Assembly: GCA_950097015.1 (NCBI GenBank)
Contig: CATNEN010000002.1
Coordinates: forward strand, 1,674,001 to 1,738,000
Direction of reading: 5' to 3'
Length of the DNA stretch: 64,000 nt
Source of the DNA: Macrostomum hystrix
Lineage: Eukaryota > Animalia > Platyhelminthes
Shown: positions 15,801-36,800 of the stretch, one piece after another
Layout of the letters: every line of letters starts with the position of its first letter
How positions within the stretch are numbered: the first letter of the stretch is position 1
Made by a program: the position numbers and the translations under genes
The notes under the pieces: model-generated
What the model was told of the DNA's origin: nothing
What the model saw: only the letters and a program-made list of their open reading frames with translations
The model's database searches: none

Positions 15801-18800
15801 GTGGGATCATTGTCAACTGGGGGTTCATTGTAGCTTTAAAAAGCTGTAAATTCAGCTGCTAAAAAGTATATACTAGACGAATTAAAAGTATTTCTGCTCC
15901 CCGAAGGGGGGCAAAACTTGCTAGTAATAACTAAAAACTAAAGTGTACATTCCTGCCCTTCCGAACATTTCTAAGCCTTTCGAAGCACAGGCTCTGCTAT
16001 GCAGTCATTTTTACAATAGTTATTGAATTATGTTTTAGAATGACACCTACAGTCTGCTGGAGCTGTATACTGGTGAAATCGATGGTCAAAATCAATACAT
16101 TATCTATGTCAGCAAGGGTAGCCAGGTGAGTAATATTTAAAAATAATTCTTGAAATTACTGTAAGTAGTACGCGAGCTCATTTTGTTTCATTTCTGAAGG
16201 CCTTCACACCGGTATCAATGCGAGTGATTCCGGACGCTCCGAATGCGCTGAATGTTCTGGAGCACCTGTGCGATGGCTACGGCGCCGCTTCTGCTGCTCC
16301 TGCGAGTGCTGCTTCCAGGTGGCTGCGATTGGAGCGTGTTAGAGATCTGCCAATCGAACTGTTTCGATCTAGCTCCAGACAGCTCAGAGAGGTTAGATCC
16401 TCAAGCATTTTAAAGAGTTTAATTTTGGGAAATTTTCGAGTTTTAGTGGACTAGAATTTGGGAGATTAGAATGAGGGGTAATTTTTGAGATAATACAATT
16501 GTGGTATCTGTTAGGATATTAGAATTATAGTATCTTTTAGGATTTTAGAATGACTGTATCTTTTGGGATTTTAGAATGACGGTATCTTTTGGGATTTTAG
16601 AATGACGGTATCTTTTGGGATTTTAGAATGATGGTATCTTTTGGGATTTTAGAATGACGGTATCTTTTGGGATTTTAGAATGACGGTATCTTTTGGGATT
16701 TTTGAATGATGGTATCTTTTGGGATTTTAGAATGATGGTATCTTTTGGGATATTAGAATTATAGTATCTTTTAGGATTTTAGAATGACTGTATCTTTTGG
16801 GATTTTAGAATGACTGTATCTTTTGGGATTTTAGAATGACGGTATCTTTTGGGATTTTAGAATGATGGTATCTTTTGGGATTTTAGAATGACGGTATCTT
16901 TTGGGATTTTAGAATGACGGTATCTTTTGGGATTTTAGAATGACGGTATCTTTTGGGATTTTAGAATGACGGTATCTTTTGGGATTTTAGAATGACGGTA
17001 TGTTTTGGGATTTTAGAATGACGGTATCTTTTGGGATTTTAGAATGACGGTATCTTTTGGGATTTTAGAATGACGGTATCTTTTGGGATTTTAGAATGAC
17101 GGTATCTTTTGGGATTTTAGAATGACGGTATCTTTTGGGATTTTAGAATGACGGTATCTTTTGTGGGATATTTGAATGAGGCAGATCTTTAGAGGATATA
17201 TTTTGGGGGAGGCGGTCGGTGGCAGAGCGGTTATCGCGTTTGCCTGTCGCACCAAGGTCCCTAAGTTCGATTCCACGGCGAGGCCACATTCATTTGGGGC
17301 GCAGCCGCGGAGAGAAGGCTTGGGGGCTTGTCGTGCAATTTGAGGGCCAACCTCCAAGGCACAGTGAAAGTGTACACTGCCTGACGATGAGAAAGTCAGG
17401 GCAGTTGTACACACCTTTGTGAGCGTGTGCCTGCGTACAGTATCTGTGTGCGTGTGTGCTCAGTAGTCAGCGAAATGAGCAGAATTGCCTCCTCGCTGGC
17501 TGCGGGTCTAGTGTCACCAAAATGACGTGCCATTGCCCGCAACCCTCCTGCAATTATTATTATTATTATTATTATCTTTTGGGGATATTTGAATGAGGGA
17601 AAATCTGTAGAGATTTTTGGCTTTCTGTGAGATCAACTCATCCTTATTTTTGCCCAGGTGCTCAGCCAAATCGTGCCCAGTTTTCTCAACTCCGGCGAGG
17701 ACGAGTTTGTCTCCGCCTGCTGGCAAGAAGCACAGTCGTTTCTAGTCGACGCATTCAGCGGCATGAATTCCGGCGCCAGTTTTCAAAAAATGCTGCAGAG
17801 CCGCAGATGGTCTCTGGACGATGTGAGTTTCATTGTTGGTGCATTCGAGTTTTTGTTAGTTTACTGTCTCATGATATTTTTATCATAGCATCCTTTTATT
17901 TAAAAAACTACACCAGACTAGTTTGTACATCATCTTGTCTCATATATCAACAAAACGAAATTCTCATACCTCACATTAAATATCAACGAAATTCTCATAC
18001 CGCACATCAAATACCAACGAAATTCTCATACCGCACATCAAATACCAACGAAATTCTCATTCCTCACATCAAATATCAACGAAAGTGTCATGTCTCGCAT
18101 CAAATATCAACGAAATTCTCATACCTCACATAAAATATCAACGAAATTCTCATACCGCACATCAAATATCAACGAAATTCTCATACCTCACATCAAATAT
18201 CAACGAAATTCTCATACCTCACATAAAATATCAACGAAATTCTCATACCTCACATCAAATACCAACGAAATTCTCATACCTCACATCAAATATCAACGAA
18301 ATTCTCAAAGCTCACATCAATTATCAACGAAAGTGTCATGCCTCGCATCAATTATCAACGAAATTCTCATACCGCACATCAAATACCAACGAAATTCTCA
18401 TACCGCACATCAAATACCAACGAAATTCTCATTCCTCACATCAAATATCAACGAAAGTGTCATGTCTCGCATCAAATATCAACGAAATTCTCATACCTCA
18501 CATAAAATATCAACGAAATTCTCATACCGCACATCAAATATCAACGAAATTCTCATACCTCACATCAAATATCAACGAAATTCTCATACCGCACATCAAA
18601 TATCAACGAAATTCTCATACCTCACATCAAATACCAACGAAATTCTCATACCTCACATCAAATACCAACGAAATTCTCATACCTCACATCAAATATCAAC
18701 GAAATTCTCAAAGCTCACATCAATTATCAACGAAAGTGTCATGCCTCGCATCAATTATCAACGAAAGTGTCATGCCTCGCATCAATTATCAACGAAAGTG

Positions 18801-21800
18801 TCATGCCTCGCATCAATTATCAACGAAAGTGTCATGCCTCGCATCAATTATCAACGAAAGTGTCATGCCTCGCATCAATTATCAACGAAAGTGTCATGCC
18901 TCGCATCAATTATCAACGAAAGTGTCATGCCTCGCATCAATTATCAACGAAAGTGTCATGCCTCGCATCAATTATCAACGAAAGTTTCATGCCTCGCATC
19001 AATTATCAACGAAAGTTTCATGCCTCGCATCAATTATCAACGAAATTCTCATACGCCACATCCAATATCACTAAATTCTTATTGCTCTCACTTTTTTTGA
19101 TGCTCACCAGGTGGACCTGATAGAAGGTGTGCTGATGCAGTACCAAAGCCAGAGTGCCGGTCAGTCAAACTATCATGCGCATTCGTTGTGTGACCAGTTT
19201 TTTTCGGCTATAAAATGCGACAGTAGATCTTCAGCTGGTTGCATTGATTCCACCTATAAATTTGCTATGGCGGTGGACTTTTGCTCGGTAAGAAACAAAA
19301 CCGATTGTGTAATATTTGTAGTTTGTATTGACATAGTAAAAATGTTTCGGTACATACGTTTGTACTGAGGCGGAAGCCTCACGTATTAAAAATAATCGAT
19401 AAAAACACATTAGTACTTTAATAGTACACACGTACTTTAAGAGCTTGCGGGTACTTTAGGGGTGTGCGGGTACTTTAAGAGCTTGCGGGTACTTTAGGGG
19501 TGTGCGGGTACTTTAAGAGCTTGCGGGTACTTTAGGGGTGTGCGGGTACTTTAAGAGTTTGCGGGTACTTAAAAGATAATCACTACTTTGAGATGCATTT
19601 TTCTGTACTACAGAAGCAAAACGTTTAATAGTTACTAATGCACTTTAAAAGTACAAGCCTATACTTGAAGCATTATTGTAATATTCGCTACGATACGCTG
19701 ATTGCGCTTCACTGCAGCTTCTGCGCGACCTCCTGTCAGTATCGGAGGCCGCCAACTGGCAGCTGTGGCCATCGGCCTTCGTCAAGCGTCGGGCATTAAA
19801 AGCTTTCATCCAGCGCGCCGATCCGATTGAAGAAGCTGACGTTAAGCGCCTCATTGCCGAATCGTCGCCGTCGGCTCAGAGTCTGACGGTGCACAGAATC
19901 TTCGCGGTCGGGCGTAGAGAAGAGGCAGCCGCCTTTCGCGAAGATCTCGGCAATGTTCGACTGCTGTTCCACGCCTCGTCAGCTAGGAATCTGGTCGGCA
20001 TTCTGTCCAGGTATTTCCCCTGGGGAAAGATTTCAAATACCCACTGCCTACTTCACGATATCTTCCAAACCGGATGACCGATTTTCGTGAAATTCCACCA
20101 TATGGTTCATAATTTTCTGCTCCTAGTACGATGAACTAGCTTTCAAAACCGTCCGAGTTATTTGAAGAACCCGTTGACAAGAAAAACTAACATTTCTCTT
20201 TATAAACTTCTATAGCGAATCCGAATTAGTTAAAAAAAACAAACAAATAAATCAAGAAAAATAGTTAAAAATGACAGTCCACATGGTTATATGATGAAAT
20301 TTTGTGAGCAAAAAATAGTCTTTCTACTCTTTATAAAAAGTAGACTTTATAGCTTAGCGTACATCTAGTGTACTTTATTTATTCTGTGCGCTAGGCTTGC
20401 AAGTGAGTTCTTTAAATAGATAAGAAATCAAGTCAAATCAAATCAAATTGATTTCCGTCAGCACTCATCGGTCACGTGAGTTCTAAAAATAGAAACTGAC
20501 TCATCTACACATGATTCATATAACTATAGGCTTGTCCCATCGGGTGTACATTCGAAGAGCTAAAAATAGTAACAGCGTCATCCAATTAGCTGTAAATCTT
20601 AATTGTAAAAACCAATTGATTTGTAGAGGCCTGCTGCCACCTCGTCTGGCATCGGGCCAACAGCTGCTTCATCGTCGTGATGCTGGCAAGCTTGGCCGGG
20701 GCATCTACTTTGCCGACAGCCTCGCCGTCGCTGCGAAATATTCTCTGCCTTCAAATTCTGGCTGTCGTGTCGCCCTGGTGTGCTCTGTGGCACTGGGCCG
20801 CGTTCAGCAGGTGACGCATCCGCTTCCGCCGGACACGTCAGCTCCGACATCTCCGGATTGTCACAGCGTCGCGTCGATTCCATCTTCAACGACAGACGGT
20901 CGCCAGGTTGATGAAGACGAATTTGTTGATCGCGAATTCGCTGTGTTTAACGCCGCACAGCAGAAGCTGCAATTCATTGTGGAATTCTCGGCGCCTGGTG
21001 ATCGCGTTGATACGGAGAACTTCAACACTGTGGAGGGGCGTGAGCTTGAGATCGATGAGGATCAGCTGCAGGATGACGACAGTGAACAATCGCCGCTTGA
21101 TCTAGAGTTAAATGTGCGCCTAGCTGATCAACAGTTTGGGTTGCTAAGCAACGGAGATAAACCACTGCCTCTGCGTTCGGTTCACGTGCGAGCCAGTCTT
21201 ATCGATCTGGTTGCTGAGGTGAGTGCGGTCTCTAAGTTTGCTCTGAGGATCTGAACCCTGCTCAATATGTCCTTCAGGCAATCTCTACCTCTGCTCAGTG
21301 TGTCCTTCAGTGTCCTTCAAGTGCTCTGTAGCCCTGCTCAGGGTGTCCTTCGGGTGCTCTCTACCCCTGCTCAGTGTGTCCTTCAGGTGCTCTCTACCCC
21401 TGCTCAGTGTGTCCTTCAGGTGCTCTCTACCCCTGCTCAGTGTGTCCTTCGGGTGCTCTCTACCCCTGTTCAGTGTGTCCTTCAGGTGCTCTCTACCCCT
21501 GCTCATTGTGCCCTTCAGGCAATCTCTAACCCTGCTTAACTCTCCACTGTCCGCACTCCCCCCTACTCCAGGTTGTGCTGCTGCAGGAGTTCTTCAACAC
21601 TGGGGACACTCCGGTTGAGGCTCGCTACGTGTTCCCATTGAGCGAAGGCTCGGCTGTTTGCGGGTTCGAAGCCTACATTGGCGCCAAGCGAGTGGTTGGC
21701 GTTGTCAAGGAGAAGGAGAAGGCCAGACGAGAGTACAGAGAGGCGGTGGCTGCAGGCAAAGGCGCTTACCTGATGGAACAGTCAGCCGAGAGTCCCGAAG

Positions 21801-24800
21801 TCTTCACCGTATCTGTCGGCAATCTGCCGCCCAGGTGCGCCGCTGTCATTAAAATTCGCTACGTCTGCGAGTTGAAGCCGTGCGGCGAGGCGGTGATCTT
21901 CTCGCTGCCCGGCAGCGCCGCGCCTTGGCAGACGGCAGCCGCAGCCGGAGACAAACTGCAGGCCGTCACGGACACAGCCGCCGTCCGGCGCCCCATTGGC
22001 TCATTTAGCCTTGAAGCCGGACTCCGAATGCCCTACCCAATCAGGGCGCTGGCTTCAGCCACGCATCAAATACAGGTGCGGAGACAGTAAGGGCTGGAGG
22101 TGGAGGTCGAGTGTCAGAGTTGGAGGTAGAGTGTCAGAGGTGGAGGCAGAGTGTCAGAGGTGGAGGCAGAGTGTCAGAGGTGGAGGTAGAGTGTCAGAGG
22201 TGGAGGTAGAGTGTCAGAGGTGGAGGTAGAGTGTCAGAGGTGGAGCTAGAGTGTCAGAGGTGGAGGTAGAGTGTCAGAGGTGGAGGTAGAGTGTCAGAGG
22301 TGGAGGTAGAGTGTCAGAGGTGGAGGTAGAGTGTCAGAGGTGGAGGCAGAGTGTCAGAGGTGGAGGTAGAGTGTCAGAGGTGGAGGCAGAGTGTCAGAGG
22401 TGGAGGTAGAGTGTCAGAGGTGGAGGTAGAGTGTCAGAGGTGGAGGTAGAGTGTCAGAGGTGGAGGCAGAGTGTCAGAGGTGGAGGTAGAGTGTCAGAGG
22501 TGGAGCTAGAGTGTCAGAGGTGAAGGTAGAGTGTCAGAGGTGGAGGTAGAGTGTCAGAGGTGAAGGTAGAGTGTCAGAGGTGGAGGTAGAGTGTCAGAGG
22601 TGGAGGTAGAGTGTCAGAGGTGGAGGTAGAGTGTCAGAGGTGGAGGTAGAGTGTCAGAGGTGGAGGTAGAGTGTCAGAGGTGGAGGCAGAGTGTCAGAGG
22701 TGGAGGTAGAGTGTCAGAGGTGGAGGTAGAGTGTCAGAGGTGGAGGTAGAGTGTCAGAGGTGGAGGTAGAGTGTCAGAGGTGGAGGTAGAGTGTCAGAGG
22801 TGGAGGTAGAGTGTCAGAGGTGGAGGTAGAGTGTCAGAGGTGGAGGCAGAGTGTCAGAGGTGGAGGTAGAGTGTCAGAGGTGGAGTCAGAGTGTCAGAGG
22901 TGGAGGTAGAGTGTCAGAGGTGGAGGTAGAGTGTCAGAGGTGGAGGTAGAGTGTCAGAGGTGGAGGTAGAGTGTCAGAGGTGGAGGTAGAGTGTCAGAGG
23001 TGGAGGCAGAGTATCAGAGGTGGAGGTAGAGTGTCAGTGGTGGAGGTAGAGTGTCAGAGGTGGAGTTAAAGTGTCAGAGGTGGAGTTAAAGTGTCAGAGG
23101 TGGAGGTAGAGTGTCAGAGGTGGAGTTAAAGTGTCAGAGGTGGGGTCGAGTGTCAGCTGGGACAGTAACTAAGGCACAATGCTCTCCAACAACTGAGCTC
23201 GCTGACGCCCGCAGGTGAAGCGCTCGGAGACCTGTGCAGTGGTCCGCCTGGCCCGCACACTTGAGCAACAGACTCTGGGCGAGCTCGGTTTCCGTCTCGA
23301 GGTGTCCCTGGCCGAGATCAACGCTCCCCGACTGTGGGTTGAGCGGCCTGACGAGTCGTTGAATTCCTCCGGACCCGACGCTCTGATGGTCTGCTTCTAT
23401 CCCGAGTTCGAATCGCAGCCGTCTGGATTGTCTACCGCCGAGTGCACAAGCGTGGTCACTCTACTGCTGGACTGCAGCAGGTCGATGGCCGGCGAGCCGA
23501 GTGTTGACGCCAGGAGGCTGGCTGCTCTGCTGCTGCGACGCCTGCCACCGAAAGTGCGCATCAATGTGGCCAGATTCGGCTCGCAGTTCCAGGACTGCTT
23601 TGCCCTGCCGCAGCCGTTGGCGAGGCGAGTGGCTGACTTCTGGTTTCTATTTTTTTCTAGGAAAACGTTTGATGCTTAGGCCTAATGAAAAATGAAAATG
23701 ATAATTGCTGCAGGCAATGGCACATCATTTGGTGACACTAGACCCGCAGTCAGCGAGGAGGCAATTCTGCCCATCTCGCTGACACCTGAGCACACAGTGA
23801 CACGCCCACACAGGTGTGTACATCTACCCGGGCCTTCTCATCGTCTGTCCTTTGTAGCAGTGTACACTCTCACTGTGCCTTGGAGGTTGGCCCTTAAGGG
23901 CGTAAATTGCACGACAAGCCCCCAAGCCTTCTCTCCGCGGCTGCACCCCAAATAATTGTAATCTTGAGCTCAAGGACCTCGAGCTCTCTGGTGCGAGAAG
24001 CAAACGCGTACCTCTCTGACACTAACCTCAACGCGTTATGGATGGCCATAGAATAGATTCTAGAAATTTAACTAGCAAATTCTAGGAAAACCGCTTTAAT
24101 AGTGCCGAGGGAAAATTATTATCGCTATAGTAGAAATAAACTATTTATGGATTTCTAATGGACAGTAAAAACTCATTTTTTTGTATGATTTTTATGTTTT
24201 CTAGGAATTGAACTTTTTTCCCCGAAAAACGGTTCGATGCTTTTCTAGGAAAGAATCTATTTGCATTCCAGTGAACCATTTATAATTTTCTTGGAAAGTT
24301 TCCGGCTTTTTTTCCGAAAAACGGTTCGATGCTTTTCTAGGAAAGAATCTATTTGCATTTCAGTGAACCATTTATAATTTTTTTAGAAAGTTTCCGGCTT
24401 TTTTTCCGAAAAACGGTTCGATGCTTTTCTAGGAAAGAATCTATTTGCATTCCAGTGAACGCTTTATAATTTTCTTGGAAGGTTTCCGGCTTTTTTCAGA
24501 AAATCATTCGACTGATTGTGATTTAGAAAACGGTTGAATTGTTTTACAGCAAATATCTGTTTGTATTCTTGGAAAGTATTTGGTGGTTTCTAGGAAAATT
24601 GACAGTTTTATTCCCGGGAAAAGTTGATGCTTTCCAGGAATTAGTCTGATTGTACTATTTGAAGCCGTGAGAGAATTTTCTAGGAAAGCTTCTGTTTGTT
24701 TTCCAGGTTTCTGGCTTTTTTAGAATATATAATAAAGTGTCTTGTTGAGTTGCGGGAAACAATTTAATACTTTTCTAGAAAATTCTTTTTTTTCTAAGAC

Positions 24801-27800
24801 CAAAGAAGTTTTACCAAACTCCGTATTTTTTTGGAATAAATGGGGTGCTGTACTGTTTTTAACGCGCTGTTTTGCTTGCCCAAATTGCTCACCTTCAGAA
24901 AAGCTGTCCAATCGCGCTGCTTAGAATTCATTCGCGCCTCCAGTCCAATAATGGGCGGCACCAATTTATCGGCCTACCTGTCCTACCTGGCCAGACTGCG
25001 CGAGTTCGGACCGCACGCCTTGCTAATCATCTCAGATGGTCACTACGAGGCTAAGGAGGCCGCTCTGGCTCTGGCTTCGACCGGCGCCAATAAACAGCTT
25101 CGCCTCCTGGCCTGCTCGGTGGGACCTTCGCCCGATCGGCACCGGCTTCGAGCCCTGGCCTCAGCGGCCGGCGCAGGAGGCTCCGTTGAATTCTTTGACC
25201 CAGCCCGACAATCTAGATGGCCTAGTCTAGCCGACGATCTAGTAGCCAGGCTGAACTCTCCGGCCCTGACTGACCTCAGCGTTGAATGGCATCTGGACGA
25301 GGACGATCGAAGCGAAGACGGTGGCAACGATTCGGCTGTTCGCCAAGCTCCGGCTTGCCCGTCGGCGCTTTTCAACGGCCAGCGGCTGATTGTGTACGGC
25401 CTGATGCCGCGCGAAGGTCGCGGCTGCCAGCGGGCGACGCTGCACGCCAAGGCTGGCGACTGCAGGATCAGCTGCACCGTCTTCACCAGCGAGCTGTGCT
25501 TCACCACCGGCTCACTGGTGCACGCCCTGGCTGCCAGGAGCCTCATTGCTGACTGGGAGGCCGGCAGTCTGGATACTGACCCAGCACTGCATCAGGTTTG
25601 GCGCAGCTTTTTGTGTCTTTTTTTCGTTTTTATGGTCTCTTTGTTTGATTGGTTGATGGCGTCTTTGATAGATTTTTATAGTCTTTGTTTGATTTACTTT
25701 GTTTGTTTGATTTGATTTAGTATCTTTGTTTCTATGATAGTGTCTATTTTTCGATTGTTTTACATTGTCTTTGTTTGATTGCTTGTTAGTGTCTTTGTTT
25801 GATTGCTTGATGGCGTCTTTGTTTGATTGTGTAATAGTGTCTTAGATTGATTGCTTGATACTGTCTTTGTTTCTATTTTTGGAAATAGCTTAGTTTTTTA
25901 TGAATGTCCTAAGTACATTTTTTCAAATTGTCTTTGGTAGTGTCTTTGTTTGTTTCTCTGATAGAGTCTTTGTTCGATTGCTTGATGTGTCTTTGTTTGT
26001 TTCTCTGATAGAGTCTTTGTTCGATTGTTTGATAGTGTCTTTGTTTGTTTCTCTGATAGAGTCTTTGTTCGATTGTTTGATGTGTCTTTGTTTGTTTCTC
26101 TGATAGAGTCTTTGTTCGATTGTTTGATGTGTCTTTGTTTGTTTCTCTGATAGAGTCTTTGTTCGATTGTTTGATAGTGTCTTTGTTTGTTTCTCTGATA
26201 GAGTCTTTGTTCGATTGTTTGATGTGTCTTTGTTTGTTTCTCTGATAGAGTCTTTGTTCGATTGTTTAATGTGTCTTTGTTTGTTTCTCTGATAGTGTCT
26301 TTCTTCGATTGTTTGATAGTGTCTTTGTTCTTCTATGTTTTTAACATTTCAAGAATCTGCTGAAATTTCAGATGAAGCGGTTGGAGCAGAAGGCGGATCT
26401 GGTTCAGCTGTCAATCCGCTATTCTGTGGCCTGCCAGTTCACCAGCTTTGTGGCCATAGAAGATCGGGAAAAGGACGAGAAGTTCGAGTCAGATCTGACA
26501 GCCAGACTGCGGAGTCTACTAGAGGAGGCGTCTGTTGACATCCTAACTAGCCAGGGCTGGGAGCCAGTCACTGGGGCCGAAGACGGTTTGGTGAGTTTGG
26601 TGACACCCCGACAAGAATCGTTGAATGTCTTGACGACGCCGATGTTTTGTGATCCTGGACGGTGTTTTTTTCGAATAGAGCGGAAAATTTTAGCCCATGT
26701 TCTGGATTTCTGGATTTCTTAGAAAGGCTCGAATCTGATCCTGTAGGCCAGCATTCGTGAGAAAATCGCGGACTCCATCATCGAAGGTCAGCGACTGTCC
26801 AACGCTGGCCGCGGCGAGGAGGCTCTTCGACTTTTCGACGACCTGAAGGCCTCACTATTGCTAGCTGGCATGCATGAGATGCACCCGGTGGCCCTGTCTG
26901 TTTCAGCCAATCAGAAGGCGGCTAAGATGCGATTTTCGGCCGCTAAGGGTAAGCTGAGCTTGTGTCTTCGTTTTTTTGCTTTAGCTCGTGTCTTTGTTCT
27001 ATGCTGCTTTGCACTGTGTCTTTGTTCTTTATTCAGTTTTAACTTGTGTCCTCGTGCTGTCTTATAGGTTTTTTGGTGTCTTTGTTCTGTTCTGCTTTTC
27101 CTTGTGACCTTGTTCTGTTCTGCTTTTCGTTGTGTCTTTGTTCTGTTCAGCTTTTCCTTGGGTCTTTGTTCTTTCTTTTTTATCTCGTTTCTTTGTTTTG
27201 TTTTTGCTTTTCAACCGTCTTTGTTCTATTACGCTTTAGCTTGTCTTTGTTCTGTAATGCTTTGGATTGTGTCTTTGTTCTGTTATGCTTTAGATTGTGT
27301 CTTTGTTCTGTTATGCTTTGGATTGTGTCTTTGTTCTTTCTTTTTTATCTCGTGTCTTTGTTTTGTTTTTGCTTTTTCAACCGTCTTTGTGTTATTACGC
27401 TTTAGCTTGTCTTTGTTCTGTTCTGCTTTGTATTGTGTCTTTGTTCTTTTATGCTTTGGCTTGTGTCTTTGTTGTGTTGTACACCAATATCCCACTATTA
27501 ACTGTCATCCTATCACAGCTCTTCCTGCGACATTCAGCGTCCAAGTGAAGACTCTGACAGGCAAGCGGTTTTCCGTTGACTTGAAGCCGGACTTAACAAT
27601 TGAGCACATGAAGCAGGCCATCATGATGAAAGAGGGCATTCCAATTGAGCAAATTAGGCTAGTAGCCAACGGTCAGCAGCTTGAGAACGATTGGACAGTG
27701 GCTGGCGCTGGACTCAGTCCCGGCTGCTCTGTAAGCATTGTGCTGCGCCTTCGAGGTGGCGAGCTGGAGCCGATGGCTGAGGAGAAACCACCTGCTGAGC

Positions 27801-30800
27801 CTCGCAAACAAACCAGCTCTCGAAAATTTGGGTCCAAAAAAAGTAAGTGATTCCAATCTGCAGTTGGTCTCATTTGGCATATGGCACTCTTTAGAATCTC
27901 TAATGACACTCTTTAGAATCTCTAATGACACTCTTTAGAATCTCTGATGACACTCTTTAGAATCTCTAATGACACTCTTTAGAATCTCTAATGACACTCT
28001 TTAGAATCTCTAATGACACTCTTTAGAATCTCTAATGACACTCTTTAGAATCTCTAATGACACTCTTTAGAATCTCTAATGACACTCTTTAGAATCTCTA
28101 ATGACACTCTTTAGAATCTCTAATGACACTCTTTAGAATCTCTAATGACACTCTTTAGAATCTCTAATGACACTCTTTAGAATCTCTAATGACACTCTTT
28201 AGAATCTCTAATGACACTCTTTAGAATCTCTAATGACACTCTTTAGAATCTCTAATGACACTCTTTAGAATCTCTAATGACACTCTTTAGAATCTCTAAT
28301 GACACTCTTTAGAATCTCTAATGGCACTCTTTAGAATCTCTGATGACACTCTTTAGAATCTCTGATGACACTCTTTAGAATATCTGATGGCACTCTTTAG
28401 AATATCTGATGGCACTCTTTAGAATATCTGATGGCACTCTTTAGAATCTCTGATGGCACTCTTTAGAATCTCTAATGGCACTCTTTAGAATCTCTAATGA
28501 CACTCTTTAGAATCTCTGATGACACTCTTTAGAATATCTGATGGCACTCTTTAGAATATCTGATGGCACTCTTTAGAATCTCTGATGGCACTCTTAAGAC
28601 TATCTGATGACACTCTAAAGACTATCTGATGGCACTCTTTAGAATATCTGATGACACTCTTAAGACTATCTGATGACACTCTTTAGAATCTCTGATGACA
28701 CTCTTAAGACTATCTGATGACACTCTTTAGAATATCTGATGATACTCTTTAGAATCTCTGATGACACTCTAAAGACTATCTGATGACACTCTTTAGAATC
28801 TCTGATGACACTCTTAAGACTATCTGATGACACTCTTAAGACTATCTGATGACACTCTTTAGAATCTCTGATGACACTCTTAAGACTATCTGATGACACT
28901 CTTTAGAATCTCTGATGACACTCTTAAGACTATCTGATGACACTCTTTAGAATCTCTGATGACACTCTTAAGACTATCTGATGACACTCTTTAGAATATC
29001 TGATGACACTCTTAAGACTATCTGATGACACTCTTTAGAATCTCTAATGGCACTCTTTAGAATCTCTAATGACACTCTTTAGAATCTCTAATGGCACTCT
29101 TTAGAATCTCTGATGACACTCTTAAGACTATCTGATGACACTCTTTAGAATCTCTGATGACACTCTTAAGACTATCTGATGACACTCTTTAGAATCTCTG
29201 ATGACACTCTTAAGACTATCTGATGACACTCTTTAGAATCTCTGATGACACTCTTAAGACTATCTGATGACACTCTTTAGAATATCTGATGACACTCTTA
29301 AGACTATCTGATGACACTCTTTAGAATATCTGATGACACTCTTAAGACTATCTGATGACACTCTTTAGAATCTCTAATGGCACTCTTTAGAATCTCTAAT
29401 GACACTCTTTAGAATCTCTAATGACACACTTTAAAAGATCTAATGGCACTGTTTAGAATCTCTTGTAGTACTTTTTAGACATTATAATGGTACTTTTCTA
29501 GTCTCTATTTGGACTCTTGAGTATCTGTTTTGAAGTTTTGATACCTTTATTGCCATCAATGTTAATTTTGAATCTGCAATTCCCAGGCTCAAAGCCGCGC
29601 TGGGATCCACCGAAGCCAGAATCGATGGCCTCCTCAGCCTTCGAAAGCGAGTCAATGGAATCCGCACTAATTGTGGACTCAGGCTCGCTTCTGACTAAAG
29701 CCGCTGTGATTTCTAACCAGTCAAATGCGGCTGTCACCCTGCCCTCTGTTGTGGGCCGGCCCAGGCATCAAGGCGTTATGGTCGGCATGGGACAGAAGGA
29801 TGCCTACGTTGGACATGAAGCTGCCGGAGTTACACTTGGCTGTTAGTCTTGTCACTTTCTTTTCACTTTGTAGCTTCTGTCTTGTCACTCATATCTTCCT
29901 GTACTGTCACTCATTAGTTCCTATCTTGTCACTCATTAGTTCCTATCTTGTCACTCATTAGTTCCTATCTTGTCACTCATTAGTTCCTATCTTGTCACTC
30001 ATTAGTTCCTATCTTGTCACTCATTAGTTCCTGTCTAGTCACTCATTAGTTCCCGTCTTGTCACTCATTAGTTCCTGTCTAGTCACTCATTAGTTCCCGT
30101 CTTGTCACTCATTAGCTCCCGTCTTGTCACTCATTAGTTCCTATCTTGTCACTCATTAGTTCCCGTCTTGTCACTCATTAGTTCCTATCTTGTCACTCAT
30201 TAGTTCCCGTCTTGTCACTCATTAGTTCCTATCTTGTCACTCATTAGTTCCTATCTTGTCACTCATTAGTTCCTATCTTGTCACTCATTAGTTCCTATCT
30301 TGTCACTCATTAGTTCCTATCTTGTCACTCATTAGTTCCTATCTTGTCAATCATTAGTTCCTATCTTGTCACTCATTAGTTCCTATCTTGTCACTCATTA
30401 GTTCCTATCTTGTCACTCATTAGTTCCTATCTTGTCACTCATTAGTTCCCGTCTTGTCACTCATTAGCTCCCGTCTTGTCACTCATTAGTTCCTATCTTG
30501 TCACTCATTAGTTCCTATCTTGTCAATCATTAGTTCCTATCTTGTCACTCATTAGTTCCTATCTTGTCACTCATTTGTTCCTGTCTAGTGACTCATTAGC
30601 TGCCGTCTTGTCACTCATTAGTTCCTATCTTGTCACTCATTAGTTCCTCTCTAGTCACTCATTAGTTCCTATCTTGTCACTCATTAGTTCCTATCTTGTC
30701 ACTCATTAGTTCCTATCTTGTCACTCATTAGTTCCTGTCTAGTCACTCATTAGCTCCCGTCTTGTCACTCATTAGTTCCTGTCTTGTCACTCATTAGTTC

Positions 30801-33800
30801 CTCTCTAGTCACTCATTAGCTCCCGTCTTGTCACTCATTAGTTCCTATCTTGTCACTCATTAGTTCCTATCTTGTCACTCATTAGTTCCTATCTTGTCAC
30901 TCATTAGTTCCTATCTTGTCACTCATTAGTTCCTATCTTGTCACTCATTAGTTCCTATCTTGTCAATCATTAGTTCCTATCTTGTCACTCATTAGTTCCT
31001 ATCTTGTCACTCATTAGTTCCTATCTTGTCACTCATTAGTTCCCGGATATGACTGAAACAGTATCCTATCGTTTCTACTAATAGTAGCACATGGCGAATT
31101 AATCTTCCTCCAAATATTTTCGCATACGAAAAAAAAGTTGGAAAATTTAGTAGAAAATTTCGAAAATGATGCAAACAATATTTCCAAATTTAAGAGCAAC
31201 TAGACATGTTAAAAGTGAAATAATATTTTTCTGCAACCATAAGTCACGTGTACTACACGAAAAGAAAAAAAACCGCGTAAAAAGTGATGTTTACAAAACC
31301 GTGCGCCCAGGCGGCGGGAGGCGTATAGCAAGGGCGTATAGGAAAATTACTATGCGCCCAGGCGGCGGGAGGCGTATAGCAAGGGCGTATAGGAAAATCA
31401 CTATGCGCCCCGGCGCCGGCTGGGCGTATAGCGGGGCGCACGGCGCCCCACTCTGCGCCCCAAAAAGCTGTCCCACCGGGTATCTTGTCACTCATTAGTT
31501 CCTATCTTGTCACTCATTAGTTCCTATCTTGTCACTCATTAGTTCCTATCTTGTCACTCATTAGTTCCTATCTTGTCACTCATTAGTTCCTATCTTGTCA
31601 CTCATTAGTTCCTGTCTTGTCAGTCATCTTGTCACTCCTTACTTCCTGTCTTGTCACTCCTTAATTCCTGTCTTGTCACTCATTGCTTCTCGTCTTGGCA
31701 CCATTCACTATCTACTACTTTGTTATCGCTCTAAGCCTTGTCGTTTATTTTTTTCATGCACATTTATTAATTATATATCTCTTTCAAATTTCAGCCGTTC
31801 GACTTGAGCCGCAAGATCCAATGGTGATGGCAACTCGCCTCGATAAAACTGAAGCCAAAAGCCAGGCCCAAGAAACAGAAAACGAAGAGGAAGATGAAGA
31901 AGAATGTTTCTTAGACGGTAAATCTTACGGCTTTTTTTAATTGAACTTGGCTTTAACTACTCTGTCACCCCACCAACTGCTGTCACTCCACTACCTGCTG
32001 TGTCACTCCACTACCTGCTGTGTCACTCCACTACCTGCTGTGTCACTCCACAACCTCCTCTGTCACCCCACCAACTGCTGTCACTCCACTACCTCTTCTG
32101 TCACTCCATTACCTGCTGTCACTCCATTACCTGCTGTGTCACCCCACTTCCTGCTGTGTCACTCCACTACCTGCTGTGTCACTCCACAACCTCCTCTGTC
32201 ACCCCACCAACTGCTGTCACTCCACTACCTCTTCTGTCACTCCATTACCTGCTGTCACTCCATTACCTGCTGTGTCACCCCACTTCCTGCTGTGTCACTC
32301 CACTACCTGCTGTGTCACTCCACAACCTCCTCTGTCACCCCACCAACTGCTGTCACTCCACTACCTCTTCTGTCACTCCATTACCTGCTGTCACTCCATT
32401 ACCTGCTGTGTCACCCCACTTCCTGCTGTGTCACTCCACTACCTGCTGTGTCACTCCACAACCTCCTCTGTCACCCCACCAACTGCTGTCACTCCACTAC
32501 CTCTTCTGTCACTCCATTACCTGCTGTCACTCCACTACCTGCTGTCACTCCATTACCTGCTGTGTCACTCCATTACCTGCTGTGTCACCCCACTTCCTGC
32601 TGTGTCACTCCACTACCTGCTGTGTCACTCCACTACCTGCTGTGTCACTCCACTACCTGCTGTGTCACTCCACTACCTGCTGTGTCACTCCACTTCCTGC
32701 TGTGTCACTCCACTACCTGCTGTGTCACTCCACTACCTGCTGTGTCACTCCACTTCCTGCTGTGTCACTCCACTACCTGCTGTGTCACTCCACTACCTGC
32801 TGTGTCACTCCACTTCCTGCTGTGTCACTCCACTACCTGCTGTGTCACTCCACTTCCTGCTGTGTCACTCCACTACCTGCTGTGTCACTCCACTTCCTGC
32901 TGTGTCACTCCACTTCCTGCTGTGTCACTCCACTTCCTGCTGTGTCACTCCACTACCTGCTGTGTCACTCCACTACCTGCAGACAGACTTATTAAACAGA
33001 ATGATACTCTGGAATATGCCATCTGTAATTTATAAAATTTATAAATAAATATATTTATAGATTTATTCTCAGCATCACCTGAAGAGTGCTCGATGCAAAT
33101 CGGTGCTTCATTTCGCAATGCGCAAAAAGCATGTAAGTTCCGAGCAAAAAAACATGAATGTAAATATAATTGAACTGAAGTATGCCATATTTGCGCTGTG
33201 CGTGATTAGCAACAGCTAGATATTATATTAGTACATTTTACAAGCTTGCACTCTTCACACTCACCTATTATTAGCGCCTGATCGGGGCTGGACTGCGGAT
33301 TCGCTGGTCTTTCAGCAGTGCGAAAGCGATGGTGAGAATCATTTTAGCCACGCTCTTCTTATCTTTAGTATTCCACTCCGCTACCACCTGTCCCTATCAC
33401 ACCTGTCCATTTCACACCTGTCCATTTCACACCTGTCCATTTCACACCTGTCCATTTCACACCTGTCCATTTCACACCTGTCCCTCTCACACCAGTCCCT
33501 CTCACACCAGTCCCTCTCACACCAGTCCCTCTCACACCTGTCCATTGCACACCAGCCCAGCTCTCACACCTGTCAATTTCACGCCTGTCAATTTCACACC
33601 TGTCAATTTCACACCTGTCCCTCTCAAACTAGTCCCTCTCACACCAGTACCTCTCACACCAGTCCCTCTCACACCTGTCCCTCTCACACCAGTCCCTCTC
33701 ACACCTGTACCTCTAACAACAGTCCCTCTCACACCAGTCCCTCTCACACCTGTCCATTTCACGCCTGTCCCTCTCACACCTGTCCATTTCACGCCTGTCA

Positions 33801-36800
33801 CCATCACACCTGTCCATTTCACGCCTGTCACCATCACACCTGTCCATTTCACGCCCGTCACCGTCACACCTGTCCATTTCACGCCTGTCACCATCACACC
33901 TGTCCATTTCACGCCCGTCACTATCACACCTGTCCATTTCACGCCTGTCACCGTCACACCTGTCCATTTCACGCCCGTCACCATTACACCTGTCCATTTC
34001 ACGCCTGTCACCATCACACCTGTCCATTTCACGCCCGTCACCATCACACCTGTCCATTTCACGCCCGTCACCATCACACCTGTCCATTTCACGCCCGTCA
34101 CCATCACACCTGTCCATTTCACGCCCGTCACCATCACACCTGTCCATTGCACACCAGTCTCTTTCACACCTGTCACTCTCACACCTGTCACTCTCACACC
34201 TGTCCCTCTCACACCTGTCCCTTTCACACCTGTCACCATCACACCTGTCCATTTCACGCCTGTCACCATCACACCTGTCCATTTCACGCCCGTCACCATC
34301 ACACCTGTCCATTTCACGCCCGTCACCATCACACCTGTCCATTTCACGCCCGTCACCATCACACCTGTCCATTGCACACCAGTCCCTGTCATACCTATCC
34401 CTCTCACACCTGTCCATTCCACGCCTGTCACAATCACACCTGTCCCTCTAACACCAGTCCCTCTCACACCAGTCTCTTTCACACCTGCCACTCTCACACC
34501 TGTCACTCTCACACCTGTCCCTCTCACACCTGTCCCTCTCAAACCAGTCCCTCTCACACCTGTCCCTCTCAAACCAGTCCCTCTCACACCTGTCCCTCTC
34601 ACACCTGTCCCTCTCACACCTGTCCCTCTCACACCTGTCCCTCTCACACCTGTCACTCTCACACCTGTACTGTCCACACCTGTCACTCTCACACCTGTCC
34701 CTCTCACACCTGTCCCTCTCACACCTGTCCCTCTCACACCTGTCCCTCTCACACCTGTCCCTCTCAAACCAGTCCCTCTCACACCTGTCCCTCTCACACC
34801 TGTCCCTCTCACACCTGTCCCTCTCACACCTGTCCCTCTCACACCTGTCCCTCTCACACCTGTCCCTCTCACACCTGTCCCTCTCACACCTGTCCCTCTC
34901 ACACCTGTCCCTCTCACACCTGTCACTCTCACACCTGTACTGTCCACACCATTCCAGACATAGCCTACTCTGCCTTGGATAAAGGACTAGAGGAGGACGG
35001 GTTTTTATACTCACTTGGACCCACCGATTGTGCTCAGGACTCAGAAGGCGAATGTGAGCTAAAATGATTTACTTGTTCGAGTTTCATCTTTAGTTTCTTC
35101 CTCACATTTTATTAGCAACCGATAAAAGTACATTGCACATTGCTTCAGATGATGCCGAAAGGAATGTTGAATCTGAAATATCACTCTCTGCGGGTGTCAA
35201 TCAAATGCAGTGTAAGCGTCAAGAATTGAATTCTTATTTTGTAGCTCAAATTATTTATATTTTTTTTCTATGCATTTCATATGCTTAGCAGTACTCCGAC
35301 TGACGTCGCCTAGGGCAGATTATGCACAACAAATGACTTGTTAGTTCGTGTTTAAACATTTTATTAACTACACACCGTTGTTTTCAGACTTTTAACGTAC
35401 CAGTAAGTATGTAGCCCATTGACAGAAAAGGTAGTGGAGTGACACAGCAGGTAGTGGAGTGACACAGCAGGTAGTGGAGTGACACAGCAGGTAGTGGAGT
35501 GACACAGCAGGTAGTGGACTGACGCAGTAATTAGTGGAGTGACAGAGTAGATAAAATGTAATATACTTGCTTTTTCAATGCTGCTGATTTATTATGCAAT
35601 CAAATGTGAACCACGCAAACTTCCAGTCCTGGATCAACCGAAGGGATCAATTTCCGTGGCCGCTGACGAACTTCAAAGCCAACCACGGGGTAATTTCGAA
35701 AACTTTTTTTTGAATTTTATTTTTTATTATCCTCACCTTTCTTTGAAATTCACTACCTGCTGTGTTACTCCACACCCTCTCTGTCACTCCACCACGTCCT
35801 CTGTCACTCCACTTCCTGCTGTGTCACTCCACTACCTGCTGTGTCACTCCACTAACTACTGCATCACTCCACTACCTGCTGTGTCACTCCACTAACTACT
35901 GCATCACTCCACTACCTGCTGTGTCACTCCACTAACTACTGCATCACTCCACTACCTGCTGTGTCACTCCACTAACTATTGCATCACTCCACTACCTGCT
36001 GTGTCACTCCACTAACTACTGCATCACTCCACTACCTGCTGTGTCACTCCACTACCTGCTGTGTCACTCCACTACCTGCTGTGTCACTCCACTACCTGCT
36101 GTGTCACTCCACTACCTGCTGTGTCACTCCACTACCTGCTGTGTCACTCCACTACCTGCTGTGTCACTCCACTACCTGCTGTGTCACTCCACTACCTGCT
36201 GTGTCACTCCACTACCTGCTGTGTCACTCCACTACCTGCTGTGTCACTCCACTACCTGCTGTGTCACTCCACTAACTACTGCGTCACTCCACTACCTGCT
36301 GTGTCACTCCACTAACTACTGCATCACTCCACTACCTGCTGTGTCACTCCACTAACTACTGCATCACTCCACTACCTGCTGTGTCACTCCACTACCTGCT
36401 GTGTCACTCCACTACCTGCTGTGTCACTCCACTACCTGCTGTGTCACTCCACTACCTGCTGTGTCACTCCACTACCTGCTGTGTCACTCCACTACCTGCT
36501 GTGTCACTCCACTACCTGCTGTGTCACTCCACTACCTGCTGCATCACTCCACTAACTACTGCATCACTCCACAACCTCCTCTGTCACTCCACAACCTCCT
36601 CTGTCACTCCACAACCTGCTCTGACACTCCACAACCTGCTCTGTCACTCCACGCACCCCTCCTTTCTTGGTGACAGGATTATTCGAGTCTAAAATGAAAA
36701 GCAAAAAGAAGGAAAGCAACTTGCTTGAGGCAGACAGCAGCTCTGGAGATTTCGAAGACTCAGAAGACTCAGACGACTCAGAAGACTCAGAAGACTCAGA

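Follow-up and report, generated by a model that had tools for sequence, protein, structure and literature searches.

An in-line ubiquitin module with an intact LRLRGG tail in a PARP4-like protein of the flatworm Macrostomum hystrix

PARP4 is the least understood PARP, and what vaults do is a long-standing question. Among the systems in which ubiquitin is joined to another polypeptide, the fusion precursors (polyubiquitin, Ub-eL40 and Ub-eS31) carry it in frame, with its diglycine beside the partner; in these classical precursors the ubiquitin is near-identical to the free form, lies at the N-terminus and is cleaved free. Integral ubiquitin-like domains, such as those of Rad23, parkin and the USP-type UBLs, are embedded beta-grasp folds that serve binding and generally lack LRLRGG, and the classical integral domains do not keep the diglycine. 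The same tail is known from ISG15 and from the viral proteases directed at LRLRGG, and ubiquitin itself is ADP-ribosylated by SdeA (at R42) and by DTX3L-PARP9 (at G76). UFD reporters carry an N-terminal ubiquitin, on which the chains that lead to their degradation are assembled. Linear Ub-Pro fusions retain their ubiquitin, and a proline directly after ubiquitin impairs its removal by deubiquitinases (PMC8605321). In algae, ubiquitin may be fused N-terminally, C-terminally or internally, according to Sibbald et al. 2019 (PMC6332867), who warn that small ubiquitin exons are overlooked by gene predictors.

Here we describe a ubiquitin domain encoded within a PARP4-like gene of Macrostomum hystrix. 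The window, which is the whole stretch of DNA that was analysed, spans 64,000 nucleotides (contig CATNEN010000002.1, positions 1,674,001 to 1,738,000 of the forward strand). In coordinates of the window, the features of the gene are as follows.

41-666, + strand: 5' exons of the gene that probably encode BRCT, from weak tblastn matches of the BRCT regions of P0041, P0092 and P0003.
19718-22084, + strand: exons of the PARP catalytic and VIT domains (Pfam PARP, E 1e-12; VIT, E 4.5e-31; colinear tblastn matches).
24897-25595, + strand: exon of the C-terminal part of the vWA domain (weak Pfam VWA_3 match; RNA contigs).
26372-26590, + strand: post-vWA exon with a conserved FTSFVAIE segment (RNA joints; tblastn matches with mollusc and other PARP4-like proteins).
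26747-26948, + strand: exon immediately 5' of the ubiquitin exon, a post-vWA helical segment (RNA joints 26590>26747 and 26948>27519).
27519-27842, + strand: ubiquitin exon of 324 nt, phase 1-1, with AG at 27517-8 and GT at 27843-4.
27743-27760, + strand: LRLRGG tail, ubiquitin residues 71-76 (translation and ubiquitin alignment).
27761-27842, + strand: Glu after the diglycine (27761-27763) and a charged linker, 27 residues in translation.
29587-29841, + strand: putative next exon, phase 1-1, with an N-terminal piece of actin (about actin residues 5-60; weak Pfam Actin match).
37945-39147, + strand: putative large exon with a piece of the HSP70 substrate-binding domain (Pfam HSP70, E 2.9e-10).

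The order of domains is probably BRCT, then PARP, VIT, vWA, ubiquitin, actin piece, further exons and HSP70 piece, and the start of the gene may precede the window. Pfam PARP, VIT and VWA_3 fall on consecutive exons that are colinear with PARP4-like proteins, and the PARP domain looks catalytically intact, as judged from the H-Y-E positions in the ORF translations and the Pfam match. The vWA exon at 24897-25595, which was the query of our exhaustive search for relatives, is 84% identical to a Macrostomum lignano PARP, and the actin-piece exon is 75% identical to an M. lignano model. Further downstream, the HSP70-piece exon is colinear with Dreissena polymorpha LOC127851394 (P0174), a protein that shares the order of ubiquitin, actin piece and HSP70 piece, and the lengths of the RNA contigs agree with the chain of exons. 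Human and other vertebrate PARP4, the vault PARP, has the N-terminal order BRCT-PARP-VIT-vWA, of which the flatworm gene shows PARP, VIT and vWA together with weak BRCT-like matches, and was recovered as a homolog. No Pfam match to the C-terminal vault-binding domain was obtained on the downstream ORF at 39966-40412 or on the C-terminal parts of the relatives. In full-length relatives G76 lies at residues 1386-1475, so the earlier figure of about 1410 aa up to RGG is plausible.

The domain in the window is a genuine ubiquitin module built into this macrostomid PARP4-like protein. A sequence-only reading of this DNA had proposed a colinear ubiquitin fold of 76 residues that is 43% identical to ubiquitin, and both statements hold. 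Positions 27533-27760 (+ strand) translate into 76 residues equivalent, without gaps, to ubiquitin residues 1-76, 33 of which are identical (33/76, 43%) in our own count, and the translation of 27533-27790 passes through SIVLRLRGG into ten further residues. The domain matches Pfam PF00240 with an E-value of 4e-16 and 59 bits, for which the curated cut-off is 25.4 bits, with residues 3-74 on profile positions 1-72 of 72, and phmmer against the PDB aligns it without gaps to ubiquitin residues 3-76. An AF2 model, computed from a 31-sequence alignment, has a mean pLDDT of 87 (94-97 in the core, 66-73 past the diglycine), and Foldseek against the PDB superposes it on ubiquitin at a target-normalised TM of 0.93-0.96 and an rmsd of 0.8-1.5 Å. 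The domain thus combines a profile score above the cut-off, a predicted beta-grasp fold and a C-terminal LRLRGG, the features by which we judged membership of PF00240. The alignment to ubiquitin also confirms the residues that had been singled out earlier: L8, R42, V70 and the L71-G76 tail are retained and followed by Glu, and K48Q, K63P, K29A and H68S are all present. Further substitutions in the same alignment are I44V, F45A, Y59A and F4Q. The linker past the diglycine is predicted to be flexible, with a pLDDT of 66-73 and no secondary structure in the model.

The domain had also been read as internal to the protein, and RNA contigs bear this out by placing the ubiquitin exon within one PARP4-like mRNA. 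In X4 and X5, the contigs splice position 26948 to 27519 and exit at 27842/3, and single contigs of 2222 and 2591 nt in these two sets carry the ubiquitin exon in frame with the upstream vWA exons. The X2 contig, from a second study, has the identical upstream junction (26948>27519), and across the three runs and two studies all joints are GT..AG. The contigs were placed on 24800-27880, beside a tandem repeat that lies downstream of the ubiquitin exon at 27881-28323, and they extend 1251 and 1261 nt (about 1.25 kb) beyond the ubiquitin exon. This overrun, together with a chain of phase 1-1 exons of matching length, points to a junction between the ubiquitin exon and the actin exon. Since the ubiquitin exon is itself symmetric (phase 1-1), its skipping would preserve the reading frame.

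The M. lignano gene models, which skip the ubiquitin exon, would fit a different view, in which the ubiquitin ORF is an annotation artefact and belongs to a small gene in its own right, a pseudogene or a retrocopy within a PARP4 intron. The probability of this is close to nil, as the RNA contigs splice the exon in frame to PARP4 exons at GT..AG sites, the ubiquitin has neither a start nor a stop codon within the exon, and its position is the same in many annotated and transcript-derived orthologs. We therefore rejected a separate gene or retrocopy on the RNA splicing and the colinearity with relatives. The absence of the exon from the three M. lignano models (P0001, P0151 and P0261) may mean that the module is optional or dispensable, or may reflect the tendency of predictors to miss small ubiquitin exons (PMC6332867). 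When the part of the M. lignano protein that flanks the insertion point was used for word searches, these returned M. lignano models only and no other Macrostomum orthologs.

Comparison with other PARP4-like proteins indicates that the domain in the window is probably a local copy of an old, cassette-like element that directly follows the vWA region in relatives of PARP4. With our own HMM, a ubiquitin domain was found at the same colinear place in 49 of the 265 retrieved PARP4-like proteins, and PF00240 is present in 33 of the 120 listed. The carriers comprise gastropods, bivalves, a sponge, Euglena, Diplonema and other protists, with the BRCT-PARP-VIT-vWA-ubiquitin architecture in molluscs, Euglena and Diplonema, and the flatworm ubiquitin is colinear with the PARP4-like proteins of Biomphalaria, Sinanodonta, Euglena, Dreissena and Dysidea. 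Biomphalaria glabrata PARP4-like (P0155) and Euglena gracilis EG_transcript_154 (P0092), for example, both have a post-vWA ubiquitin with an LRLRGG-type tail. These ubiquitin-bearing relatives are database predictions on which our literature searches found no paper, and searches on PARP4 with a ubiquitin-like domain, decoy, tripwire or bait returned no description of the architecture. PF00240 occurs in none of the vertebrate PARP4 proteins listed, and vertebrates are among the lineages without ubiquitin on a PARP-VIT-vWA tree. On the same tree, the euglenozoan outgroup and several animal lineages have ubiquitin; the tree requires at least eight gains or losses, between which it does not distinguish. 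Outside vertebrates, PARP4 thus recurrently carries an in-line ubiquitin whose conserved LRLRGG tail is mostly succeeded by Pro, and this part of the protein is probably ancient.

The copy in the window stands somewhat apart from this family in its sequence. The motif TVxxLK, found in the family at ubiquitin positions 22-27, is absent from it and reads TIEHMK, and with at most 37/76 identities to the PARP4 ubiquitins the copy is no closer to them than to ubiquitin itself (33/76). Sequence alone therefore cannot prove a common origin, and the case for one is built on position and neighbouring modules. Recent capture from polyubiquitin was considered and rejected, given the 43% identity and the orthologous position.

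Within the family, the tail is the best-kept part. Across 40 relatives, its six positions are 88% identical to ubiquitin, compared with 52% for positions 1-70, and the diglycine is kept in 34 of 41 distinct domains, so the module passes the test of diglycine conservation in orthologs that had been proposed for it. In many relatives surface as well as core residues are near ubiquitin. Pro stands directly after the diglycine in 22 of the 34 relatives that bear it. The Pro-bearing domains are nearer ubiquitin (median 48/76 versus 33.5/76; Mann-Whitney p 8e-5, in a test that ignores phylogeny and whose non-Pro cases amount to only about four to five independent lineages). The mollusc, sponge and euglenozoan relatives mostly have Pro (or Gly) at this position and a body nearer ubiquitin, whereas the flatworm copy has Glu and its more diverged body.

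These features set the flatworm domain apart from each of the described systems. Like the fusion precursors, it is an in-frame ubiquitin with a diglycine beside its partner, and the residue after the diglycine is not Pro; unlike them, it is neither near-identical to ubiquitin nor N-terminal or repeated, and it lies some 1300-1400 residues into the polypeptide. The Ub-GG-Pro junction that defines Ub-Pro-X/UFD substrates is common to the 22 relatives above, but the flatworm copy has a GG-Glu junction together with K29A and K48Q. With Glu after the diglycine and without K29 and K48, it does not count as a Ub-Pro fusion and is no obvious acceptor of chains. It shares with the domains of Rad23, parkin and the USP-type UBLs (type-2 ubiquitin-like domains) an embedded fold within a larger polypeptide, and differs from them in that a conjugation-type LRLRGG is present and is the best conserved part. 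The tail motif, R42 and G76 are those acted on in the ISG15, SdeA and DTX3L-PARP9 systems, although no such enzyme has been linked to the flatworm protein and G76 is held in a peptide bond unless the chain is cleaved.

As the best explanation of these observations, we consider it somewhat probable that the module is a built-in ubiquitin that is normally left attached and acts as a handle or a mimic. Its surface and tail (L8, R42, V70 and L71-G76) would be read by ubiquitin-binding or ubiquitin-directed proteins. On such a reading, LRLRGG would be the most conserved part because partners read the tail, and Pro would follow the diglycine in most relatives because it shields the bond from host deubiquitinases. 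With GG-Pro in the majority of relatives, the family default looks like a retained, uncleaved ubiquitin, and the tail seems to persist family-wide without routine cleavage at that site. The flatworm copy, with its Glu, its diverged body and its loss of the K29, K48 and K63 chain acceptors, may have escaped deubiquitinase recognition, or may be cut. What is shown here is the fold, the tail, the exon, the upstream mRNA continuity and the family conservation, Pro included; that the module stays uncleaved, which partners it has and how it may relate to PARP activity or to vaults is inference. Because classical integral domains lack the diglycine, a binding handle alone does not predict that it should be conserved. 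The Glu followed by a flexible linker is, against a handle, a context that deubiquitinases normally cut.

The sequence-only reading had gone further, to a possible protease switch or conjugatable PARP. The conserved diglycine and the Glu after it agree with the first of these, and the Pro after the diglycine in 22 of 34 relatives does not. Since Glu follows the diglycine in the flatworm copy, cleavage there is chemically possible. Endogenous deubiquitinases might then cut the protein behind LRLRGG, either constitutively or in response to a signal, into a BRCT-PARP-VIT-vWA-ubiquitin product and a C-terminal fragment with the actin and HSP70 pieces that starts with Glu. An internal ubiquitin insert in pestivirus polyproteins is cut by host hydrolases, and the native LRLRGG, the retained R72, R74, L8, R42 and V70, the Glu in place of Pro, the predicted flexible linker and the conservation of the diglycine among relatives would all suit such processing. 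We nevertheless regard it as doubtful. The prevalence of GG-Pro argues that the family has been selected against cleavage (PMC8605321), and with a body only 43% identical to ubiquitin that carries H68S, F45A, Y59A and F4Q, recognition by deubiquitinases is uncertain. A conjugatable PARP would demand still more, namely that the free diglycine on a fragment of about 1400 residues be activated by an E1 and conjugated to targets. All that speaks for this is R72 and the intact RLRGG tail. It requires prior cleavage, which most relatives block via Pro; the neighbours of the I44 patch are changed (I44V, F45A, H68S); and we are aware of no case in which an E1 loads a ubiquitin extended so far at its N-terminus. 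A conjugatable PARP is thus unlikely, to the point of being scarcely credible, and that an E1 would charge a PARP-ubiquitin product of about 1400 residues is pure conjecture. Overall, the family comparison lowers the odds of either proposal. GG-Pro in most species and GG-Glu in the flatworm provide a natural experiment on cleavage.

The C-terminal halves of animal PARP4-like proteins carry varying pieces of host proteins, comprising ubiquitin, actin, HSP70, 14-3-3 and EF-hand proteins as well as ribosomal P protein, synaptobrevin, Snf7 and clathrin. Their order is conserved, with ubiquitin always before actin, and their presence or absence varies. A recurrent in-line ubiquitin in an array with actin, HSP70 and other hub pieces offers a handle on the C-terminal half of PARP4, for which partner recruitment, a degradation signal and bait are candidate roles. 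As bait, or an integrated decoy, the ubiquitin, actin, HSP70 and other host pieces would mimic hubs attacked by pathogen enzymes, and their modification or cleavage would alter the behaviour of PARP4. Host-derived domains with turnover of presence and absence between lineages are what an integrated decoy displays, and the conserved order of the pieces, a ubiquitin surface (not the core alone) near that of ubiquitin in many relatives, and a Pro that would shield the bond from host deubiquitinases are in keeping with it. We consider bait improbable, however, as no pathogen, effector or immune read-out has been linked to PARP4-like proteins, the Pro would also hinder most pathogen deubiquitinases, and the modules could just as well serve as adaptors for partner recruitment; our literature searches returned no description of such a role for PARP4-like proteins. 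A broader version, to which we give similarly little credence, would make non-vertebrate PARP4 proteins sensors that display ordered pieces of hub proteins, in which the ubiquitin tail baits pathogen enzymes, Pro shields it from host deubiquitinases, and the flatworm Glu, in place of that shield, could let cleavage at the diglycine act as a switch parting the PARP half from the array. The pieces named for this sensor array are ubiquitin, actin, HSP70, 14-3-3, EF-hand proteins, the ribosomal P-stalk tail, synaptobrevin and Snf7.

Pfam matches to the PARP catalytic, VIT and vWA domains lie in + strand exons upstream of the ubiquitin domain in the window, which is eukaryotic DNA, with weak BRCT-like matches at its extreme start and pieces of the actin N-terminus and the HSP70 substrate-binding domain downstream. 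The PARP H, Y and E positions are present, as read in ORF translations (...LLFHASS..., ...GIYFADS... and ...DREFAVF...). Four exons (...-25595, 26372-26590, 26747-26948 and 27519-27843) are linked across GT..AG introns within single spliced RNA contigs, 2222 and 2591 nt long, from runs X4 and X5 of one study, and these contigs extend 1251 and 1261 nt past the ubiquitin exon. A contig from run X2, of a second study, fuses the final 16 nt of exon 26747-26948 to the ubiquitin exon. The reading frame is unbroken across the joined exons, and the ubiquitin domain is therefore internal to a PARP4-like mRNA and not a separate gene. This in-frame splicing also refutes the reading of the ubiquitin ORF as an artefact. 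The exons further downstream were predicted by enumerating those that keep phase 1-1, not from an observed junction out of the ubiquitin exon.

Ubiquitin exon and predicted downstream exons
27519-27842, + strand, ubiquitin exon, 324 nt, phase 1-1, AG at 27517-8 and GT at 27843-4
29587-29841, + strand, predicted exon, actin piece
31795-31917, + strand, predicted exon
33073-33132, + strand, predicted exon
34958-35053, + strand, predicted exon
35116-35211, + strand, predicted exon
35289-35339, + strand, predicted exon
36677-36946, + strand, predicted exon
37129-37209, + strand, predicted exon
37945-39147, + strand, predicted exon, HSP70 piece

With the predicted exons before the last summing to 1032 nt, the X4 and X5 contigs would end in a poly-Pro/Pro-Gln run near 38124-38230, likely a place where assembly tends to break. 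Between exons 26372-26590 and 26747-26948, intron positions 26600-26710 attract many unrelated RNA contigs (summed depth 46-101) that match for ~50-100 nt at 90-95% identity and then diverge into other sequence, which points to a short dispersed repeat transcribed elsewhere. Introns at 17627-19100, 27881-28323 and 31941-37900 are filled by long tandem repeats, which produce lengthy spurious ORFs and a strongly negative GC skew.

Translation of 27533-27790 gives a 76-residue domain followed by 10 further residues. The Pfam ubiquitin family model is matched over its full length (E 4e-16, 59 bits; cut-off 25.4 bits), and in a phmmer search of all PDB chains the domain aligns ungapped to ubiquitin residues 3-76. 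Our recount of 33/76 identical residues reproduces the 43% of the sequence-only reading, and its residue calls are likewise borne out: L8, R42, V70 and L71-G76 are kept, K29A, K48Q, K63P and H68S are changed, and Glu follows G76. The same alignment adds the substitutions F4Q, I44V, F45A and Y59A. Since K29, K48 and K63 are absent, the module should be a poor chain acceptor. An AlphaFold2 model, for which 31 PARP4-family ubiquitin domains were aligned, reaches a pLDDT of 94-97 in its core and is unstructured and of low confidence past GG; in Foldseek it superposes on ubiquitin and NEDD8 structures (target-normalised TM to ubiquitin, 0.93-0.96). Together, these agreeing lines of evidence establish that the ubiquitin domain is real, well past chance. 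A folded module with a native tail is thus expressed as part of a PARP4-like mRNA.

The position of this module is ancient and conserved among PARP4-like proteins, and its tail is conserved too. When the window ubiquitin was scanned against 150 PARP4-like representatives, more than 12 carried ubiquitin domains ~90-135 residues past the conserved post-vWA segment, including Biomphalaria, Sinanodonta, Plakobranchus, and the transcript-derived proteins of Euglena gracilis and Diplonema. By Pfam these proteins have the domain order BRCT-PARP-VIT-vWA-ubiquitin, and the window is colinear with them by tblastn, ubiquitin included. PF00240 occurs in 33 of the 120 PARP4-like proteins that a word search starting from the Biomphalaria protein listed together with their precomputed Pfam content. 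The carriers are most gastropods, heterodont bivalves, a second bivalve paralog and the sponge Dysidea avara; the domain is missing from every vertebrate, echinoderm, hemichordate, amphioxus and cnidarian protein in that list. With our own HMM the domain was found in 49 of 265 PARP4-like proteins. In a phylogeny built on the PARP-VIT-vWA region, the euglenozoan outgroup, protist sequences and several animal clades all have ubiquitin, and the state of the domain changes at least eight times, a count that does not separate gain from loss, in which some absences may be model omissions, and which comes from a tree with a long Macrostomum branch. This distribution and the conserved position favour an old ubiquitin that would then have been lost repeatedly.

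In an exhaustive protein search, the top match of the vWA exon (24897-25595) was a Macrostomum lignano 'Poly [ADP-ribose] polymerase' at 84% identity. All three M. lignano models (P0001, P0151 and P0261) lack ubiquitin, and their equivalent of exon 26747-26948 directly joins the actin exon. The ubiquitin exon is symmetric, such that skipping it preserves the frame, and the models could reflect exon loss, an alternative exon-skipping isoform or gene-model omission. Automated gene prediction easily overlooks small ubiquitin coding regions (Sibbald et al., PMC6332867).

Across 41 distinct PARP4-family ubiquitin domains, identity to ubiquitin is 88% at positions 71-76 versus 52% at positions 1-70; L73 is invariant, and R74, G75 and G76 are retained in 95%, 93% and 85%. 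The GG pair, whose absence from orthologs had been set beforehand as grounds for refuting the sequence-only reading, is retained by 34 of the 41 domains, and that refutation therefore fails. It is followed by Pro in 22 of these, by Gly in 7 (heterobranch gastropods), by Leu in 3, by His in 1 and by Glu in the window copy. A Pro straight after ubiquitin hampers removal by deubiquitinases, and such fusions retain ubiquitin (PMC8605321). It is difficult to account for a 65% share of Pro at a single position except by selection for an intact bond together with a native tail. The Pro-followed domains resemble ubiquitin more than the others do (median 48 versus 33.5 identities of 76; Mann-Whitney p 8e-5), in a test that ignores phylogeny and may represent four or five independent lineages. 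One reading, suggestive only, is that a ubiquitin-like body visible to host deubiquitinases would need the Pro, and that a drifted body would relax the constraint. The window copy (33/76, Glu) belongs to the drifted group.

As the family default, ubiquitin would remain attached and be read by ubiquitin-binding or ubiquitin-directed proteins, with the tail forming part of the recognised surface and guarded by the Pro; the flatworm copy has Glu in place of this putative guard. The interpretation drawn in the sequence-only reading is borne out in part. The proposal that the LRLRGG tail serves as a protease switch or makes a conjugatable PARP is weakened by the family-wide Pro after GG, although the Glu of the window copy leaves room for both. 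Cutting of the window copy by endogenous deubiquitinases is possible but doubtful, and a conjugatable PARP is very improbable. For the window copy we lean slightly towards a retained handle or mimic. A role as bait, which overlaps with a handle or mimic and would be consistent with the host-protein pieces found more widely among PARP4 relatives, seems quite unlikely.

The window element is a ubiquitin-family domain in a PARP4-like carrier, and lacks defining features of several known arrangements. Vertebrate PARP4 has the same N-terminal architecture but lacks ubiquitin. Classical processed precursors differ in position and identity; Ub-Pro/UFD fusions have Pro where the window copy has Glu, and this copy also lacks K29 and K48. 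Integral ubiquitin-like domains are common and generally do not keep LRLRGG, whereas the window element retains GG. Non-removable Ub-Pro fusions are known (PMC8605321), as are algal ubiquitin fusions with internal ubiquitin (PMC6332867). A 2010 survey of PARP evolution gives the vPARP clade as BRCT-PARP-VIT-vWA, and lists UBCc, UIM and U-box as other connections of PARPs to the ubiquitin system, with no vPARP ubiquitin domain (PMC2964712). Database annotations of mollusc proteins already show the Pfam ubiquitin match; our literature search for PARP4 with a ubiquitin-like domain or a decoy or bait role found no description of the architecture. The arrangement is an in-line ubiquitin fusion inside PARP4, with a conserved and usually Pro-blocked tail. 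While the single domain is modest by itself, neither the conserved LRLRGG-Pro module nor the PARP4 cassette array seems to have been described, and both can be tested directly.

In the Dreissena polymorpha protein P0174, ubiquitin (1321-1392), an actin piece (1417-1469) and an HSP70 piece (2177-2323) follow the window order, and the protein aligns to all three window exons. In the sponge protein the order is ubiquitin, actin piece, synaptobrevin. Wherever the two co-occur (6 proteins and the window), ubiquitin precedes the actin piece by 9-107 residues. The window actin piece (29587-29841) has a nearly unchanged 21-residue stretch after a drifted nucleotide-binding loop, and equivalent pieces lie directly past vWA or ubiquitin in PARP4-like proteins of sponges, cnidarians, bivalves and hemichordates. 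More broadly, non-vertebrate PARP4-like proteins (e.g. P0174, P0187, P0192, P0193, P0214, P0229 and P0233) hold variable Pfam pieces of conserved host proteins in their C-terminal halves, namely actin (PF00022), HSP70 (PF00012), 14-3-3 (PF00244), EF-hand/calmodulin-like domains, ribosomal acidic P protein (PF00428), synaptobrevin (PF00957), Snf7 (PF03357) and clathrin repeat (PF01394). We found no paper on host-protein pieces in these C-terminal halves. Acidic motifs resembling the ribosomal P-stalk tail (DDFDEYGRSLFEE, EDDEDFGTSLFDE and EEEDDEEGFGL) occur past the ubiquitin/actin modules at P0001:1010-1196 (M. lignano) and P0214:1430-1450 (Dysidea), and the Euglena protein P0092 has a Pfam Ribosomal_60s match at 1611-1650.
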